Virus record (IMG/VR): IMGVR_UViG_3300041411_000129
Span: 186,001-250,000 of that record
DNA: 64,000 nucleotides
Reading direction: 5' to 3' (one strand)
Shown one piece after another: positions 2,909 through 13,892 of the stretch. How positions within the stretch are numbered: the stretch's first letter is position 1; the number at the start of each line of letters is the position of its first letter. The notes under the pieces were generated by a model that had not been told where the DNA came from, ran no database searches, and saw nothing but the letters and a program-made list of their open reading frames with translations. Position numbers and translations under genes: made by a program.

Positions 2909-3349
2909 ATGGGGAAATCCATCATGAGTACATTGATGCCGGAGCGTTTCTACACGCACCGAACTCTTGGCAAGATGTCGCTGTTCATCATGACCAAGTA
3001 TGACGGGAAGAACGCAGATAAGATCGAAGCTATGCTTACGAATCTGTGCCCTCAGTACTCGGGTAATATCAAGAGCGGTTATAACCTGCCTGATCGCCGG
3101 CTGTTCTTGCATACTGGTGATTACCTGACCTTCTCGTACGCGACTGGGTTTCAGGTATTCAGCGAGAAAGAGATCGAACGCAACTTCAACAAAGAACCGA
3201 TCCTCACTCGCCGTGCAACCTACTGGCTGGCTGGCTTCGTAGTCGTACTTGCTATCGCCGCCGCAGTTGTCTGGCAGATGTACGATTACGGTATTGGTTG
3301 CCCAACTCCTGCTGAGGTTAACCAGCAGGTAGGGACTATCTTCAAATGA
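2909..3349 (+). CDS. Hypothetical protein with C-terminal TM helix
   Basis: WLAGFVVVLAIAAAVVW. Confidence 0.75.
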   Translation: MGKSIMSTLMPERFYTHRTLGKMSLFIMTKYDGKNADKIEAMLTNLCPQYSGNIKSGYNLPDRRLFLHTGDYLTFSYATGFQVFSEKEIERNFNKEPILTRRATYWLAGFVVVLAIAAAVVWQMYDYGIGCPTPAEVNQQVGTIFK

Positions 3350-3423
3350 TCGCAATCTTCTAAACACAGCGCTCATCAGCGGAAACGTTGATGGGCGTTC
3401 TTTACTGCCATACGGGAGGATTT

Positions 3424-3789
3424 ATGCCTTACGACATAGTCAAGCAAAACTTGACGAGGTTAGGCACGTTGACCGGAGGTAAGTTAGGCGCCATCGACGT
3501 TATACGCGAATTGAAACAAGGTGGTTTGAGCATCTGGCTTTCTGACGATGCGCTTAACTACACGCGGCATTCGCTGCACGAATATAAGTACGCTGAACAA
3601 GTAACTGACGATCGGATCATTCTGTCCTGGCTGGACCTTCCGCCGTACCAGATTGGCATTCGCAGTCATTTCTATCTACATTCGGCGGCTGGCTTTTTGA
3701 TGTCCGCAATGAGCGATTGGCCTATGGGCTTTCGTGCTTTAATGATTCGCAAAGCTGAACAAGCACTCCAACTTTACGACAACAACTGA
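3424..3789 (+). CDS. Hypothetical protein
   Basis: GGGAGGA SD before ATG 3424. Confidence 0.7.
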   Translation: MPYDIVKQNLTRLGTLTGGKLGAIDVIRELKQGGLSIWLSDDALNYTRHSLHEYKYAEQVTDDRIILSWLDLPPYQIGIRSHFYLHSAAGFLMSAMSDWPMGFRALMIRKAEQALQLYDNN

Positions 3790-3807
3790 TTATTAAGGAA
3801 ATACCGC

Positions 3808-4902
3808 ATGGCTCGTAAAACTGTTCCGACCACATCTCAGGATAACACCAGTTTGAACCTCACCCTTGACCCAAACGATAAGCAGCCGGTCAAGACTGTC
3901 AAGGCCATCGCCAAAGCAGCGACTAAACCAGCAGCGAAGAAGCCTGGACCTAAACCCGGCGCTAAAGCCGCGGCTGCTAAAGCGGCTGTCAAGCCGGTTG
4001 TCGAGAAAGCAACCCGTAACATCGGTGAAGCGGAGGTTGGTCTGAAAACTAGCCTCGATGATCTGCCGAAAGGTTTGACCGACATCCTGCCGGATGCGAT
4101 GTTGGAAATCCTCGATACCACCAAGGGCGATGCCAAGGTCGTCAACTTCGGTGTAGGCACTCTGCCGAATGATCTCGGCTTCGTCCGCGTTTACGCTGAA
4201 GATAAACTGGTGACGATTACCGATCCAGAACATCTACCGCGTGGTTGGGTCACTCTGGAATCGAACAAGACCCTCGGGTCGAAAGTGTTCTACATCCACA
4301 CGACGAAACTGCCAGGTCACCCGCAAGAAGGCGAATACACCACTGCCCTGCGCAATGCGTACGACGTGGCGATCAGCGAAGCTCTGCGCGATGCTGGCTA
4401 CAGTGATTTCATCCCAGCCGCTGTTGCAACTATCGGCGTGGTTGAAGAGTTCAATCCAATGCTGGTAAATATGGAATCTATCCATAGTCGTCTGCGCCGC
4501 CAGCGTCGTCCTGATCAGCAGTACCTCACCCGCCCTATCGGCGAACACTACAACCGCAACACCATGTCGGTATTGACCCGCAATGGTGAAACCGACTACA
4601 TGTTCGTTCTCGATAACCTGATGGAAGTCAACACTTCCCGCGCCGCAGTCAATCAGGCAATCGAACGGGGTCATCAACTGGTGATCGTAACTATCGGCGA
4701 GCGTAGCTTCACTGCCGCTGTGACTTTGGAAAGCTATCCAATCTCACTCAACACGTTGAACCAAACACTGCTGCTCGAATACCTCAACGATGCGGTACGT
4801 GCATTGTTGGTAACGGCATGGTTTGACAAGATGATCACCGATGTGGTTGTCACCGAGTTCAATACCAAGTTCGCCTACGTCACAACCGCACCAGCCGCTT
4901 AA
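3808..4902 (+). CDS. Hypothetical protein with Lys/Ala/Pro-rich N-terminal tail
   Basis: KAATKPAAKKPGPKPGAKAAAAKAAVKP; AAGGA SD. Confidence 0.85.
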   Translation: MARKTVPTTSQDNTSLNLTLDPNDKQPVKTVKAIAKAATKPAAKKPGPKPGAKAAAAKAAVKPVVEKATRNIGEAEVGLKTSLDDLPKGLTDILPDAMLEILDTTKGDAKVVNFGVGTLPNDLGFVRVYAEDKLVTITDPEHLPRGWVTLESNKTLGSKVFYIHTTKLPGHPQEGEYTTALRNAYDVAISEALRDAGYSDFIPAAVATIGVVEEFNPMLVNMESIHSRLRRQRRPDQQYLTRPIGEHYNRNTMSVLTRNGETDYMFVLDNLMEVNTSRAAVNQAIERGHQLVIVTIGERSFTAAVTLESYPISLNTLNQTLLLEYLNDAVRALLVTAWFDKMITDVVVTEFNTKFAYVTTAPAA

Positions 4903-11725: not shown

Positions 11726-11799
11726 GTTCGAACAGCGCCGCGCGTAGCCGCCTCTTCGTAGTGCAGCCGCCCATTGGGCATTTCGCGGCCTGTTCGAAC
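11726..11799 (+). ncRNA. Structured hairpin leader 5' of tRNA-Asn
   Basis: GTTCGAACAG/CTGTTCGAAC (10 bp) plus GCCGCG/CGCGGC. Confidence 0.45.
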
Positions 11800-11804
11800 T
11801 CTGT

Positions 11805-11881
11805 TCCGCGATAGCTCAGTTTGGTAGAGCAAACGGCTGTTAACCGTTGGGTCCCTGGTTCGAGTCCAGGTCGTGGAGCCA
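11805..11881 (+). tRNA. tRNA-Asn(GUU)
   Basis: Canonical cloverleaf, loop CTGTTAA, G73, encoded CCA. Confidence 0.95.
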
Positions 11882-11896: not shown

Positions 11897-11974
11897 GGTG
11901 GGCTTAGCTCAGTTGGTTAGAGCAGCGGCGGGCTTTGCTGTGTGTCCTAGGTTCGAATCCTAGAGTCCACCCCA
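11897..11974 (+). ncRNA. tRNA-His-like RNA (G-1:C73) with non-canonical anticodon loop GGGCTTT
   Basis: Intact acceptor GTGGGCT/AGTCCAC, D and T arms, CCA; no Y32/U33/R37. Confidence 0.8.
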
Positions 11975-11981
11975 TATTCTC

Positions 11982-12070
11982 GAGACTGTAGCACAGTGTT
12001 AGTGCGATCAGCAGGCGTGGTAATTCTCGTCGGCTGGAATGCGTGGGTTCGATTCCCAACGGTCTCACCC
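11982..12070 (+). ncRNA. tRNA-like RNA with expanded anticodon arm
   Basis: GAGACTG/CGGTCTC acceptor, GCAC/GTGC D stem, TTCGATT T loop, 20-nt insert in anticodon arm, ends ACCC. Confidence 0.7.
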
Positions 12071-12106
12071 CATTTCTTTGCAGGGATGCGTAATCGAGTA
12101 TTAAGC

Positions 12107-12781
12107 ATGTCTGTTGATATCAGTAACTATCTGATCGCTACACCACTTCCAGTATCTGAAACCAATCCAGTCGCCTTAGAGCTGCTTGGATCTCTGGCAT
12201 TGATTCAATGTCCTGAGGTTGTTTCTCAGCTGGAAGATGGGTCTGTTCAATTCACCGCACCTACTAAAGGTGCGTCCAGTAAGAGTACTCACCGTACTCG
12301 CACTGAATGGAAAGAACCTGAGTACTGGGCGTTGTCTAGTGCAGCTAAGCACTGGAGTCGCCAGACGATGACTGTTACTAAAGTCAACTCTGCTCAGAAG
12401 GTGGTGGTTGCACAGATTCACGTCAAGGATGCTACAACGCCTCCTTTGAAAGTGTTCTGGAACAAAGGTAAGTTGACGATGGGTTTCCGCGGTAGTTTCG
12501 CCGATCCTACAATCGTTAACTATACCCTCCATACCGACGTACCCTTGGGCGTTCCGTTCAAGATCAGTATCGGTGTGACAGCCAGCGGTTCGGTGTCTGT
12601 CAACGCATCATGTCAAGGGGTTCCTTCCCTAAAGAACGCGTTGAAGTTGAGCAGCACTTGGTTTGACCGCGTACTTCAGTTCCATGGCGGCGTCTACAAC
12701 CAAGTCGACTACACCGATCTTACCTCTGACGAGGATGGTTCGATCTGCATTATCAGTGAGTTGTCTACAACTCACGAATGA
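12107..12781 (+). CDS. Polysaccharide lyase family 7 (alginate lyase-like)
   Basis: RTRTEWKE, QIH and QFHGGVYNQ match the three conserved PL7 strands; upstream part of the ORF-track call overlaps a tRNA-like RNA, so start set at ATG 12107. Confidence 0.85.
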   Translation: MSVDISNYLIATPLPVSETNPVALELLGSLALIQCPEVVSQLEDGSVQFTAPTKGASSKSTHRTRTEWKEPEYWALSSAAKHWSRQTMTVTKVNSAQKVVVAQIHVKDATTPPLKVFWNKGKLTMGFRGSFADPTIVNYTLHTDVPLGVPFKISIGVTASGSVSVNASCQGVPSLKNALKLSSTWFDRVLQFHGGVYNQVDYTDLTSDEDGSICIISELSTTHE

Positions 12782-12787
12782 TTCAAT

Positions 12788-12939
12788 GACTTCTATAGCT
12801 CAGTTGGTAGAGCGTCGTCACTCTCTTTAGGTCGCGGGTTCGAGTCCCGTATCCCCAGCAACGGGGATTAGCTCAGTCGGTAGAGCAGAAGAAAATTACG
12901 AGACGAAGGTCGTAGGTTCAATCCCTGCTAGAAGTCCCA
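12788..12939 (+). ncRNA. Nested double tRNA: outer cloverleaf containing a circularly permuted complete tRNA
   Basis: Acceptor ACTTCTA pairs with TAGAAGT at the end of the second unit; ATCCCC/GGGGAT hairpin; swapped anticodon stems TCGTC/GACGA and GAAGA/TCTTT. Confidence 0.85.
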
Positions 12940-12944
12940 ATTAA

Positions 12945-13020
12945 TGATGCAAGCCTGCGCCCGACACTAAGAGCCCGACGATAGTCATATAGCTCACTAC
13001 GTTGGCCGCAGGCGGCATCA
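12945..13020 (+). ncRNA. Rod-like spacer RNA A
   Basis: TGATGC/GCATCA, GCCTGCG/CGCAGGC, CCGAC/GTTGG, GAGC/GCTC, GAC-GATA-GTC. Confidence 0.6.
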
Positions 13021-13028
13021 CCCTACAC

Positions 13029-13105
13029 GCGTTCATAGTTCAGCTGGTTAGAATACTCGCCTGTCACGCGAGAGGTCGGGGGTTCGAGTCCCCCTGGACG
13101 CGCCA
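13029..13105 (+). tRNA. tRNA-Asp(GUC)
   Basis: Canonical cloverleaf, loop CTGTCAC, G73, CCA. Confidence 0.95.
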
Positions 13106-13121
13106 TATTCAAATGCTTCAT

Positions 13122-13248
13122 GATTCGCATAGCTCAGTGGTAGAGCGCCCCCACAACGGTTCGACTCCGTACGCATCCATCCTTCGGTTTGGGTGTGACC
13201 TGGATAACATGGGGGAGGTCGATGGTTCAAGTCCATCTGTGAATCCCA
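13122..13248 (+). ncRNA. tRNA-like RNA (G-1:C73, CCA) with permuted T-arm/acceptor module in the anticodon loop
   Basis: ATTCGCA/TGTGAAT; CCCCC/GGGGG; inner ACGG-TTCGACT-CCGT plus CGCATCC/GGGTGTG. Confidence 0.8.
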
Positions 13249-13254
13249 ATTCAA

Positions 13255-13322
13255 TGATCCTTGCAGCGGCTGCGCCTGAGTAAATGCTGTCTTAACTTGA
13301 CGTTACGGCGTCAAGAGGATCA
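13255..13322 (+). ncRNA. Spacer RNA B
   Basis: TGATCC/GGATCA closing helix; TTGACG/CGTCAA hairpin. Confidence 0.5.
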
Positions 13323-13332
13323 CCCGTTACAC

Positions 13333-13418
13333 GGAGAGGTTCCCGAGCGGTCAAAGGGATCAGACTGTAAATCTGACGCCTAACAGCTTCGAAGGTTCGA
13401 ATCCTTCTCTCTCCACCA
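13333..13418 (+). tRNA. tRNA-Tyr(GUA)
   Basis: Type II cloverleaf, loop CTGTAAA, A73, CCA. Confidence 0.95.
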
Positions 13419-13439
13419 TTTACCGCTTTACCGGTTTAT

Positions 13440-13572
13440 CCCTTGGTCAGCCGAAAGGGGCTGGGCGGCTATCTGTTCGATACGGTACGTGAGCGCTTTA
13501 GGCAGCTGGCCATAGGCCGCTCACGTTCGTCGTTCAGAAGCGTCGAGAGTTCAACTCTCTCACTCGGGGCCA
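13440..13572 (+). ncRNA. Third nested tRNA-like RNA
   Basis: Outer T arm GAGAG-TTCAACT-CTCTC, ACTCGGG-G-CCA end, TGGGCGG/TCGTTCA stem; inner TTCGATA loop plus CGTGAGC/GCTCACG helix. Confidence 0.65.
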
Positions 13573-13576
13573 TACA

Positions 13577-13714
13577 TGACTCCCTGTGGGACATAGGGGC
13601 TATAGCTTCGTTCGTGTTAGTTGTGTGTAGCGGTCTGCTCTGCGGAGCGCGGCCCAACATGGGAACGAGGGTTTCTGATTATCGCCGGGTGTTCGGTAAT
13701 CAGAGATGGAGTCA
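13577..13714 (+). ncRNA. Multibranched spacer RNA C
   Basis: TGACTCC/GGAGTCA closing helix; CTTCGTTC/GAACGAGG; TCTGATTATCG/CGGTAATCAGA. Confidence 0.6.
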
Positions 13715-13722
13715 ACATACAT

Positions 13723-13834
13723 GGCAAGATGATCTCTGCGAAGATGATCGGAGTACACTCTAGAAGAGTGACTTAACTAGTGCAGTTAAGGACCTAACCG
13801 TTACTGAGGTTCGATTCCTCGTCTTGTCTCACCA
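13723..13834 (+). ncRNA. Atypical type-II (Leu-like) tRNA-like RNA
   Basis: GGCAAGA/TCTTGTC acceptor, TAG in central hairpin, 7-bp variable arm, canonical T arm, TC-ACCA end. Confidence 0.55.
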
Positions 13835-13836
13835 AA

Positions 13837-13867
13837 CATAAAGCCCGGCATTCCGCCGGGCTTTATG
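13837..13867 (+). terminator. Terminator ending the RNA cluster
   Basis: CATAAAGCCCGGC/GCCGGGCTTTATG, 13-bp stem. Confidence 0.8.
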
Positions 13868-13892
13868 CTGTCACTAACTAAACTGAAGAGAA

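Follow-up and report, generated by a model that had tools for sequence, protein, structure and literature searches.

The RNA gene at positions 11897-11974 of the window derives, judging from its sequence, from a tRNA-His gene, and we tentatively read its product, hereafter the His-like RNA, as a maintained, non-decoding derivative of tRNA-His that may act as a mimic of the acceptor end and body of that tRNA. The window is the whole stretch of DNA analysed, 64,000 nucleotides corresponding to bases 186001-250000 of the source record, which is a complete virus genome of 253,921 bp with direct terminal repeats and therefore that of a jumbo phage. In a metagenome occurrence search, the DNA of this phage was confined to rhizosphere, root and soil metagenomes, and the locus was found in no RNA run.

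The Rfam tRNA model returned seven matches in the complete phage genome, all seven inside a single RNA cluster, and no real tRNA-His was found among them. The elements of the cluster follow one another on the same strand in the order listed here, with an alginate lyase gene amid them.

11726-11800, + strand: long conserved hairpin (fold -36.7 kcal/mol, z -3.95, 0 of 200 shuffles as good)
11805-11881, + strand: genuine tRNA-Asn(GUU) with encoded CCA (ARAGORN; Rfam 64.8 bits)
11897-11974, + strand: His-like RNA, a cloverleaf derived by its sequence from tRNA-His, with G-1:C73-CCA and a host-type acceptor stem (ARAGORN, Rfam, fold, six distinct homologues)
11930-11936, + strand: non-canonical 7-nt loop GGGCUUU of the His-like RNA (alignment of homologues, positions 33-37, GGCUU, being invariant)
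11982-12072, + strand: odd tRNA-like RNA with a 7-bp acceptor and A73, the 11982 RNA (Rfam tRNA 38.6 bits with a 22-nt insert; fold)
12107-12781, + strand: PL7 alginate lyase gene (Pfam PF08787, E 2.5e-42)
12788-12939, + strand: nested "tRNA in a tRNA" of 152 nt with G-1:C73-CCA, the 12788 RNA (fold, covariation, sub-threshold YrlA match)
13029-13105, + strand: genuine tRNA-Asp(GUC) with encoded CCA (ARAGORN; Rfam 68.1 bits)
13122-13248, + strand: tRNA scaffold of 127 nt with G-1:C73-CCA, the 13122 RNA (Rfam tRNA 48 bits; fold; covariation)
13333-13418, + strand: genuine tRNA-Tyr(GUA) with encoded CCA (ARAGORN; Rfam 54.8 bits)
13430-13835, + strand: conserved structured region of ~400 nt (compensatory hairpin swaps among relatives; fold)

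The genuine tRNAs (Asn, Asp and Tyr) account for three of the four members of the GUN-anticodon (queuosine) family, and the His slot is filled only by the anticodon-less RNA. As judged from the common strand and cluster, the His-like RNA is probably transcribed together with these three tRNAs. The lyase gene is a clue to the host and stands outside the RNA system. Since its bacterial homologues belong nearly all to Pseudomonas (51-65% identity) and the genuine tRNAs are similar to tRNAs of phiKZ-like Pseudomonas phages, the host of the phage is probably a soil Pseudomonas. A lyase gene in or beside the tRNA cluster was observed in many related jumbo phages (L007, L008, L015, L017, L022, L076). 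An even more similar lyase occurs in L218 and L219 in an unrelated gene context, and lyase and RNA genes therefore move independently.

The earlier note on this DNA had described the 11897-11974 gene as a perfect cloverleaf with a loop GGGCUUU devoid of U33 and of a purine at position 37, and this description was confirmed by the sequence and by the Rfam tRNA model, which scored 46.8 bits (cut-off 29, E 4e-8) with the loop handled as a local gap, a score far beyond chance. G-1 lies at 11897 and the acceptor strand GUGGGCU (11898-11904) pairs with AGUCCAC (11964-11970), followed by C73 at 11971 and an encoded CCA at 11972-74; position -2 is U. The D arm occupies 11907-11923, the anticodon stem pairs GCGGC with GCUGU (11925-29 and 11937-41), the variable loop measures 5 nt and the T arm spans 11947-63. 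All 22 pairs, G-1:C73 included, are standard. The loop carries G at 33, GCU at 34-36 and U at 37, and is without U33, purine 37 and GUG. Because of G33 and U37 no normal U-turn anticodon loop can be formed, and the inability to decode, which the note had also suggested, follows directly from this loop.

ARAGORN labelled the gene tRNA-Ser(gct) because positions 34-36 read GCU. A tRNA-Ser identity was rejected, as the label stems from the triplet alone, the RNA is without a long variable arm and it does not align with the tRNA-Ser(GCU) genes located upstream of the lyase in Psa21 and in another relative. Taken at face value, the annotation of a standard finder would give the phage a serine tRNA that it does not have. 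Complementarity of GGCUU to a spacer AAGCC or to 3' GCCA ends was likewise discarded, being too short and not conserved (L220 differs).

The kinship with tRNA-His is carried by the acceptor end and the 5' half. Six of the seven acceptor pairs are the same as in the tRNA-His of P. putida and P. fluorescens, the G5.U68 wobble included; the host tRNA-His shows G-1, GUGGGCG ... CGUCCAC, C73, CCA and U at -2, and the G-1:C73 pair, U-2 and the 3' flank are common to the His-like RNA and Pseudomonas tRNA-His. Full-length matches in two Pseudomonas genomes were tRNA-His genes only. In addition, a related jumbo phage whose lyase is 69% identical encodes a normal tRNA-His(GUG), clustered with tRNAs for Asp, Pro, Asn (two copies) and Trp, and the first 26 bases of this tRNA differ from those of the His-like RNA at 2 positions. 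The nearest relative of the T arm is a phage tRNA-Asn, the anticodon arm has no particular likeness, and four of the five central loop bases (33-37) differ from the His loop. The description of the whole as a "tRNA-His body" thus holds for the acceptor end and 5' half, by comparison with the host stem and the relative's tRNA-His; the anticodon stem and the T arm have other sequences.

The lyase gene served to trace homologues in contigs from IMG/VR, JGI, ENA and Logan, and ten contigs yielded six distinct sequences of the His-like RNA with 90-99% identity. Fifteen alignment columns vary among the six; seven of these lie in stems and all seven keep pairing, so that the 22 pairs are kept throughout (100% of pair cells paired). 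Two double compensatory changes occur, G-C to A-U at 4:69 and G.U to U-A at 27:43. The covariation test is borderline: in five distinct sequences, two double and three single compensatory changes were counted, and 28 of 500 shuffles were as good. The G-1:C73-CCA end is invariant across nine homologous copies, and the Rfam tRNA scores of all copies range from 44 to 49 bits.

Conservation of the loop in relatives had been proposed as a check, and the GGCUU core was indeed constant in the six distinct sequences, variation being limited to the flanking positions 32 (G/A/U) and 38 (U/A), with the variants GGGCUUU, AGGCUUA and UGGCUUU. The invariance of GGCUU alone is not significant (chance ~0.25, estimated from the 24% variable rate of unpaired columns), because the sequences are few and ~1-10% diverged and the neighbouring spacers are conserved as well in the same phages. 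Unconstrained loops of neighbouring RNAs are strongly diverged in these phages. Moreover, the region is a recombination mosaic, in which acceptor, loop-flank and T-stem variants are variously combined, all with GGCUU; a rate comparison with the spacers is uninformative because of this mosaic and of the spacer conservation. Random degeneration across all arms, which would mark a pseudogene, was not seen, as each stem change keeps its pair; neither uncompensated stem changes nor falling scores were found in this small and young sample. When IMG/VR was scanned with patterns representing the GGCUU loop within a tRNA frame, or the 5' ends or cores of the 12788 and 13122 RNAs, only the record's two relatives were matched. 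A metagenome scan added, among the matches listed, only copies of one known variant, and no homologue of the three RNAs was found in cultured phages. In these IMG/VR pattern scans and cultured-phage searches, the three G-1:C73 RNAs were found in this narrow lineage only.

The G-1:C73-CCA end had also been noticed on the 12788 and 13122 RNAs, and it is present there (12788/12936-12939 and 13122/13245-13248), in each case again with U at -2. The end is invariant in seven of seven homologues of the 12788 RNA and in seven of seven of the 13122 RNA. The notion of three RNAs with this shared end thus stands; the two longer ones, however, are no ordinary tRNAs, since they measure 152 and 127 nt and a structured module replaces the anticodon loop. 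The outer scaffold of the 12788 RNA consists of an acceptor of 8 bp, one of them G-1:C73, together with a D arm, an anticodon stem and a T arm; in place of the anticodon loop, a stem leads into a permuted tRNA-like module with a T arm (12834-12850), an acceptor-like 6-bp hairpin (12851-12868) and a D arm (12871-12886). The fold has an energy of -50.3 kcal/mol (z -2.4), six pairs show a double compensatory change among seven homologues, with compensatory changes in the hairpin, and some homologues carry a 21-nt expansion of the hairpin loop. The 13122 RNA is built on the same outer scaffold, and its insert comprises a 4-bp T-arm-like hairpin (ACGG/CCGU), a covarying 8-bp hairpin and a conserved single strand with GG, and double compensatory changes occur at four pairs (seven homologues).

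Since the 12788 RNA holds a permuted module of T arm, hairpin and D arm, it gave a sub-threshold match to the Rfam YrlA family (RF02553), with 40.9 bits against a cut-off of 69, and 36-43 bits in its homologues. A tandem tRNA-Asn pair in a relative scored 34.8 bits with the same model, and dimeric tRNAs are false positives for YrlA according to the YrlA authors (PMC4201824). The Ro-binding motif GNCGAAN0-1G (PMC4201824) is absent by eye from the 5' strand of the 12788 RNA; on its 3' strand, GACGAAG occurs in the window and GACGGAG in L002. No Ro/TROVE gene was found in the complete phage, and only marginal partial matches were obtained in 8 of 151 Pseudomonas species. We thus rejected the 12788 RNA as a true YrlA or Y RNA on the grounds of the score below the cut-off, the lack of a phage Ro, the marginal hits in the host genus and the false positives given by tandem tRNAs. 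It is plausible that the nested form arose from a tandem pair of like tRNAs, in which outer-with-outer and inner-with-inner pairing would be available and later become fixed by covariation.

Intron-containing tRNAs were also discarded, as the inserts of 22-110 nt are too small for group I introns and the phage is without RNA ligase or RtcB, leaving no evident splicing route; no phage-encoded Rnl1 or Rnl2 was found, the Rnl1 search having been run without a positive control. Just ahead of the outer anticodon stem's 3' strand (12893-12904 and 13197-13209), 7 bases resemble the 3' part of an anticodon loop with a NAC (valine-type) triplet, U33 and purine 37, U33 being lost in L002; they read AUUACGA, AUCACGA or CUCACGA in the 12788 RNA and AUAACAU in the 13122 RNA. 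Other jumbo phages also contain tRNA scaffolds with inserts in the anticodon arm, but without a His-type end. Jumbo-phage tRNA-like genes with an 8-nt anticodon loop or an anticodon-arm insert of ~65 nt were observed at L015 5149-5226 and L001 3250-3369; L001 is Erwinia phage Stratton, whose 3250-3369 gene is annotated in GenBank as an ordinary tRNA, tRNA-Ile(aat).

In bacteria, the pairing of G-1 with C73 causes RNase P to retain G-1 on tRNA-His, and the anticodon-binding domain of bacterial HisRS contributes to selection in vivo. Because the cloverleaf, the D/T elbow, the CCA, the acceptor, G-1:C73 and U-2 are all kept, the His-like RNA is predicted to be cut by RNase P at -1 as in the host tRNA-His, with retention of G-1, and to bind to the host HisRS, which would probably histidylate it. 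Given the role of the anticodon-binding domain, the predicted charging would be less efficient than that of a real tRNA-His. The same tRNA-His-like maturation is predicted for the 12788 and 13122 RNAs, which would be ligands, and probably substrates, of the host HisRS. The identity of bacterial tRNA-His resides mainly in G-1 and C73: transplanting the pair confers His acceptance, mini- and microhelices that bear G-1:C73 are histidylated on the strength of this pair, and HisRS also accepts as substrates those plant-virus tRNA-like structures that have a N-1:N73 pair (PMC9976931). The note's suggestion that the RNAs may be charged with His agrees with these rules. No phage-encoded HisRS, Thg1, CCA enzyme, TGT, RtcB or TROVE protein was found in the complete phage.

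The His-like RNA would read no His codon, nor would it serve as a substrate for enzymes that read U33-G34-U35. A mimic of this kind would instead occupy or titrate a host factor that recognises the tRNA by its body and not by its anticodon, candidates being HisRS, RNase P, EF-Tu or a tRNA-targeting defence enzyme that reads the body. The last is a reasonable candidate because some defences cut tRNAs outside the anticodon and phage tRNA clusters are anti-defence loci, a decoy-or-supplement role having been proposed for a phage tRNA-Tyr (PMC13096335). A wider reading is unlikely in our estimate: the one cloverleaf and the two double-elbow RNAs would form a family of anticodon-less, His-accepting mimics that keep G-1, are charged by HisRS and play a role outside decoding, either by tying up HisRS, EF-Tu or a body-reading defence enzyme, or by a charging that protects 3' ends.

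Among the alternatives, a young pseudogene is somewhat unlikely: a phage tRNA-His would have lost its anticodon loop by a few mutations or a small conversion and decay would not yet have set in, given the recent divergence of the known copies and the block-wise recombination of the region. Only six distinct sequences with 90-99% identity are at hand, the neighbouring spacers are equally conserved, the conservation of the loop core does not reach statistical significance, and elements of the cluster come and go, all of which fit such an origin. An internal copying accident is hinted at by the window copy, in which the anticodon arm agrees with the 5' end at 11 of 13 bases (GGUGGGCUUAGCU versus GGCGGGCUUUGCU), a score reached by 79 of 2000 shuffles (p ~0.04); the repeat is not significant in the relatives, and internal duplication was rejected as the origin of the loop. 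A decaying gene is also hard to reconcile with the pairing kept in seven of seven variable stem columns, two of them involving double changes, with the two variable loop positions that flank an invariant core, and with a change in four of five central loop bases while the rest stays at the quality of a host tRNA-His. The special end is, furthermore, kept independently by two other RNAs.

The hairpin at 11726-11800 lies directly upstream of tRNA-Asn, has 93-99% identity in the four relatives that hold the whole element and is possibly a leader or processing element. Similar stem-closed spacers were observed before tRNA-Asp (12941-13028) and tRNA-Tyr (13251-13332), and the hairpin and these spacers may be processing or promoter elements. 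The 11982 RNA, in which a 22-nt hairpin replaces the anticodon loop, has no G-1:C73 and ends in a CCCCA tail. This RNA is missing from L002, L220 and L221, as well as from a variant among the DNA contigs of run X4, and L312 has it upstream of the His-like RNA instead of downstream (75-159). Its behaviour is that of a movable cassette, and in L003 (1750-1846) its position is occupied by a degenerate, unrelated tRNA-like sequence. The structured region at 13430-13835 matched no Rfam family at E<=1 apart from noise and ends in a fifth tRNA-like fold, one of five arms (13723-13833), with the acceptor GGCAAGA/UCUUGUC, a T arm, a 3-nt "anticodon" loop and an ACCA tail; past this fold, a GC hairpin followed by UUUAU at ~13846-13870 was not passed by the terminator scan. 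A 106-aa ORF listed in the 13430-13870 region is probably spurious.

Two further observations were made in relatives. In L003 (IMGVR_UViG_3300048924_000090, 3157-3806), tRNA-Tyr is split in the anticodon loop by ~650 bp holding a 201-aa ORF; owing to its NUMOD3 motif and endonuclease-I-like region the insert looks like a homing endonuclease, and since there is no room for a group I ribozyme the tRNA-Tyr is probably disrupted. A ~155-nt element bounded by the inverted repeat GAGCTTATC ... GATAAGCTC, with an internal T-arm-like hairpin and no Rfam match, is found at a place that differs from phage to phage (L002 ~4283-4440, L224 ~1189-1345, L225 ~1475-1632) and replaces tRNA-Asp in one of them; it may be a small mobile RNA gene.

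As a second alternative, the cloverleaf might be a processing or scaffold element, a punctuation mark for RNase P and the 3' enzymes with no role for the mature RNA, an explanation that we regard as quite unlikely. T4 tRNA precursors are known to be processed interdependently, and tRNA-shaped units with arbitrary inserts are common in the tRNA clusters of related jumbo phages. Space around the 11897-11974 gene is tight, since it starts 15 nt past tRNA-Asn and is followed closely by the next RNA or by the lyase gene, and a promoter scan found no sigma-70-like promoter anywhere across the cluster. However, punctuation needs neither a His-type acceptor nor a CCA nor a loop core, as any tRNA or hairpin would suffice, and relatives manage without the neighbouring odd RNA.

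The earlier note had also suggested an uncleavable decoy for anticodon nucleases, and for this claim no positive evidence emerged. In its specific form, the RNA would lure a nuclease aimed at tRNA-His or the queuosine family, such as a colicin-E5-type tRNase, and we consider it very unlikely. The three genuine tRNAs make up precisely the remainder of the GUN family cleaved by colicin E5, E5-type domains exist in Pseudomonas, and phage tRNAs are known counter-measures to tRNA-cleaving defences. Nevertheless, at four of the five central positions the loop departs from that of tRNA-His, which gives a nuclease that reads the anticodon little to bind: of the U33-G34-U35 read by E5 only G34 remains, making binding doubtful. 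The phage's own tRNAs for Asn, Asp and Tyr have ordinary loops that would be open to cleavage, and a non-decoding decoy restores no translation. Moreover, a search across 151 Pseudomonas species detected the E5 domain in only 4, in three of the four cases inside large polymorphic proteins of toxin type (294-3193 aa) and in none in a known defence context. That the RNA still decodes, reading AGY (GCU) or another codon and inserting His or Ser, is highly improbable, for despite the GCU anticodon assigned by ARAGORN and an otherwise good tRNA body, G33 and U37 are incompatible with a canonical anticodon-loop fold, the long variable arm for SerRS and any alignment with the relatives' tRNA-Ser(GCU) are missing, and His at Ser codons would be harmful.

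We return to the mimic of the tRNA-His acceptor end as the preferred, if tentative, reading. Phage tRNA genes are now seen as weapons in the contest over the host tRNA pool, and the worked-out cases still decode; here, tRNA-shaped RNAs that do not decode reproduce the identity end of a single host tRNA, and two of the RNAs present a second elbow as well. If these RNAs are expressed and charged, aminoacylatable tRNA mimicry, so far known from plant RNA viruses, would also be used by DNA phages, as a bacteriophage counterpart of the His-accepting tRNA-like structures (TLS-His) of plant viruses, and a tRNA module of the Y-RNA type would be able to work independently of Ro.

As for known systems, the His-like RNA is like bacterial tRNA-His in its encoded G-1:C73 and CCA, U-2, six of seven acceptor pairs, D arm and similar variable loop, and differs from it in being without GUG, U33 and purine 37 and in the sequences of the anticodon stem and T arm. 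Phage T4 encodes among its tRNA genes the "species 1 and 2" RNAs, which are stable, have tRNA-like ends and are not adaptors, and Bacillus cereus carries on its chromosome tRNA-Other, which is aminoacylated and is not a normal adaptor. Neither the T4 species nor tRNA-Other is known to have a His-type G-1:C73 or a nested tRNA-like module. The His-like RNA would fit the T4-type stable RNAs by location and shape, as a non-adaptor among tRNA genes, sequence homology apart.

With YrlA (RF02553; Chen et al. 2014, PMC4201824), the 12788 RNA shares the permuted module closed by a stem, and the 13122 RNA represents a reduced version of that module; in place of the Ro-binding stem of YrlA, a complete tRNA scaffold with a His-type end is found here. 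Nuclease-evading phage tRNAs have anticodon- or variable-loop bases altered with respect to the host (van den Berg et al. 2023, PMC10264068), and loop bases are likewise altered in T5 tRNA-Lys and tRNA-Tyr (PMC11464382, PMC11555353). Such tRNAs keep their anticodon and decode, whereas the His-like RNA has lost its anticodon and so falls outside this class. The His-accepting tRNA-like structures at the 3' end of plant RNA viruses are pseudoknotted parts of eukaryotic-virus RNA genomes (PMC8127992; PMC9976931), and the phage RNA is a free-standing cloverleaf gene in a DNA phage. Both would be viral non-decoding tRNA mimics, and the -1:73 pair is what makes the plant-virus structures HisRS substrates; by analogy, TLS-His is thus the nearest functional precedent for a viral His identity put to use outside translation.
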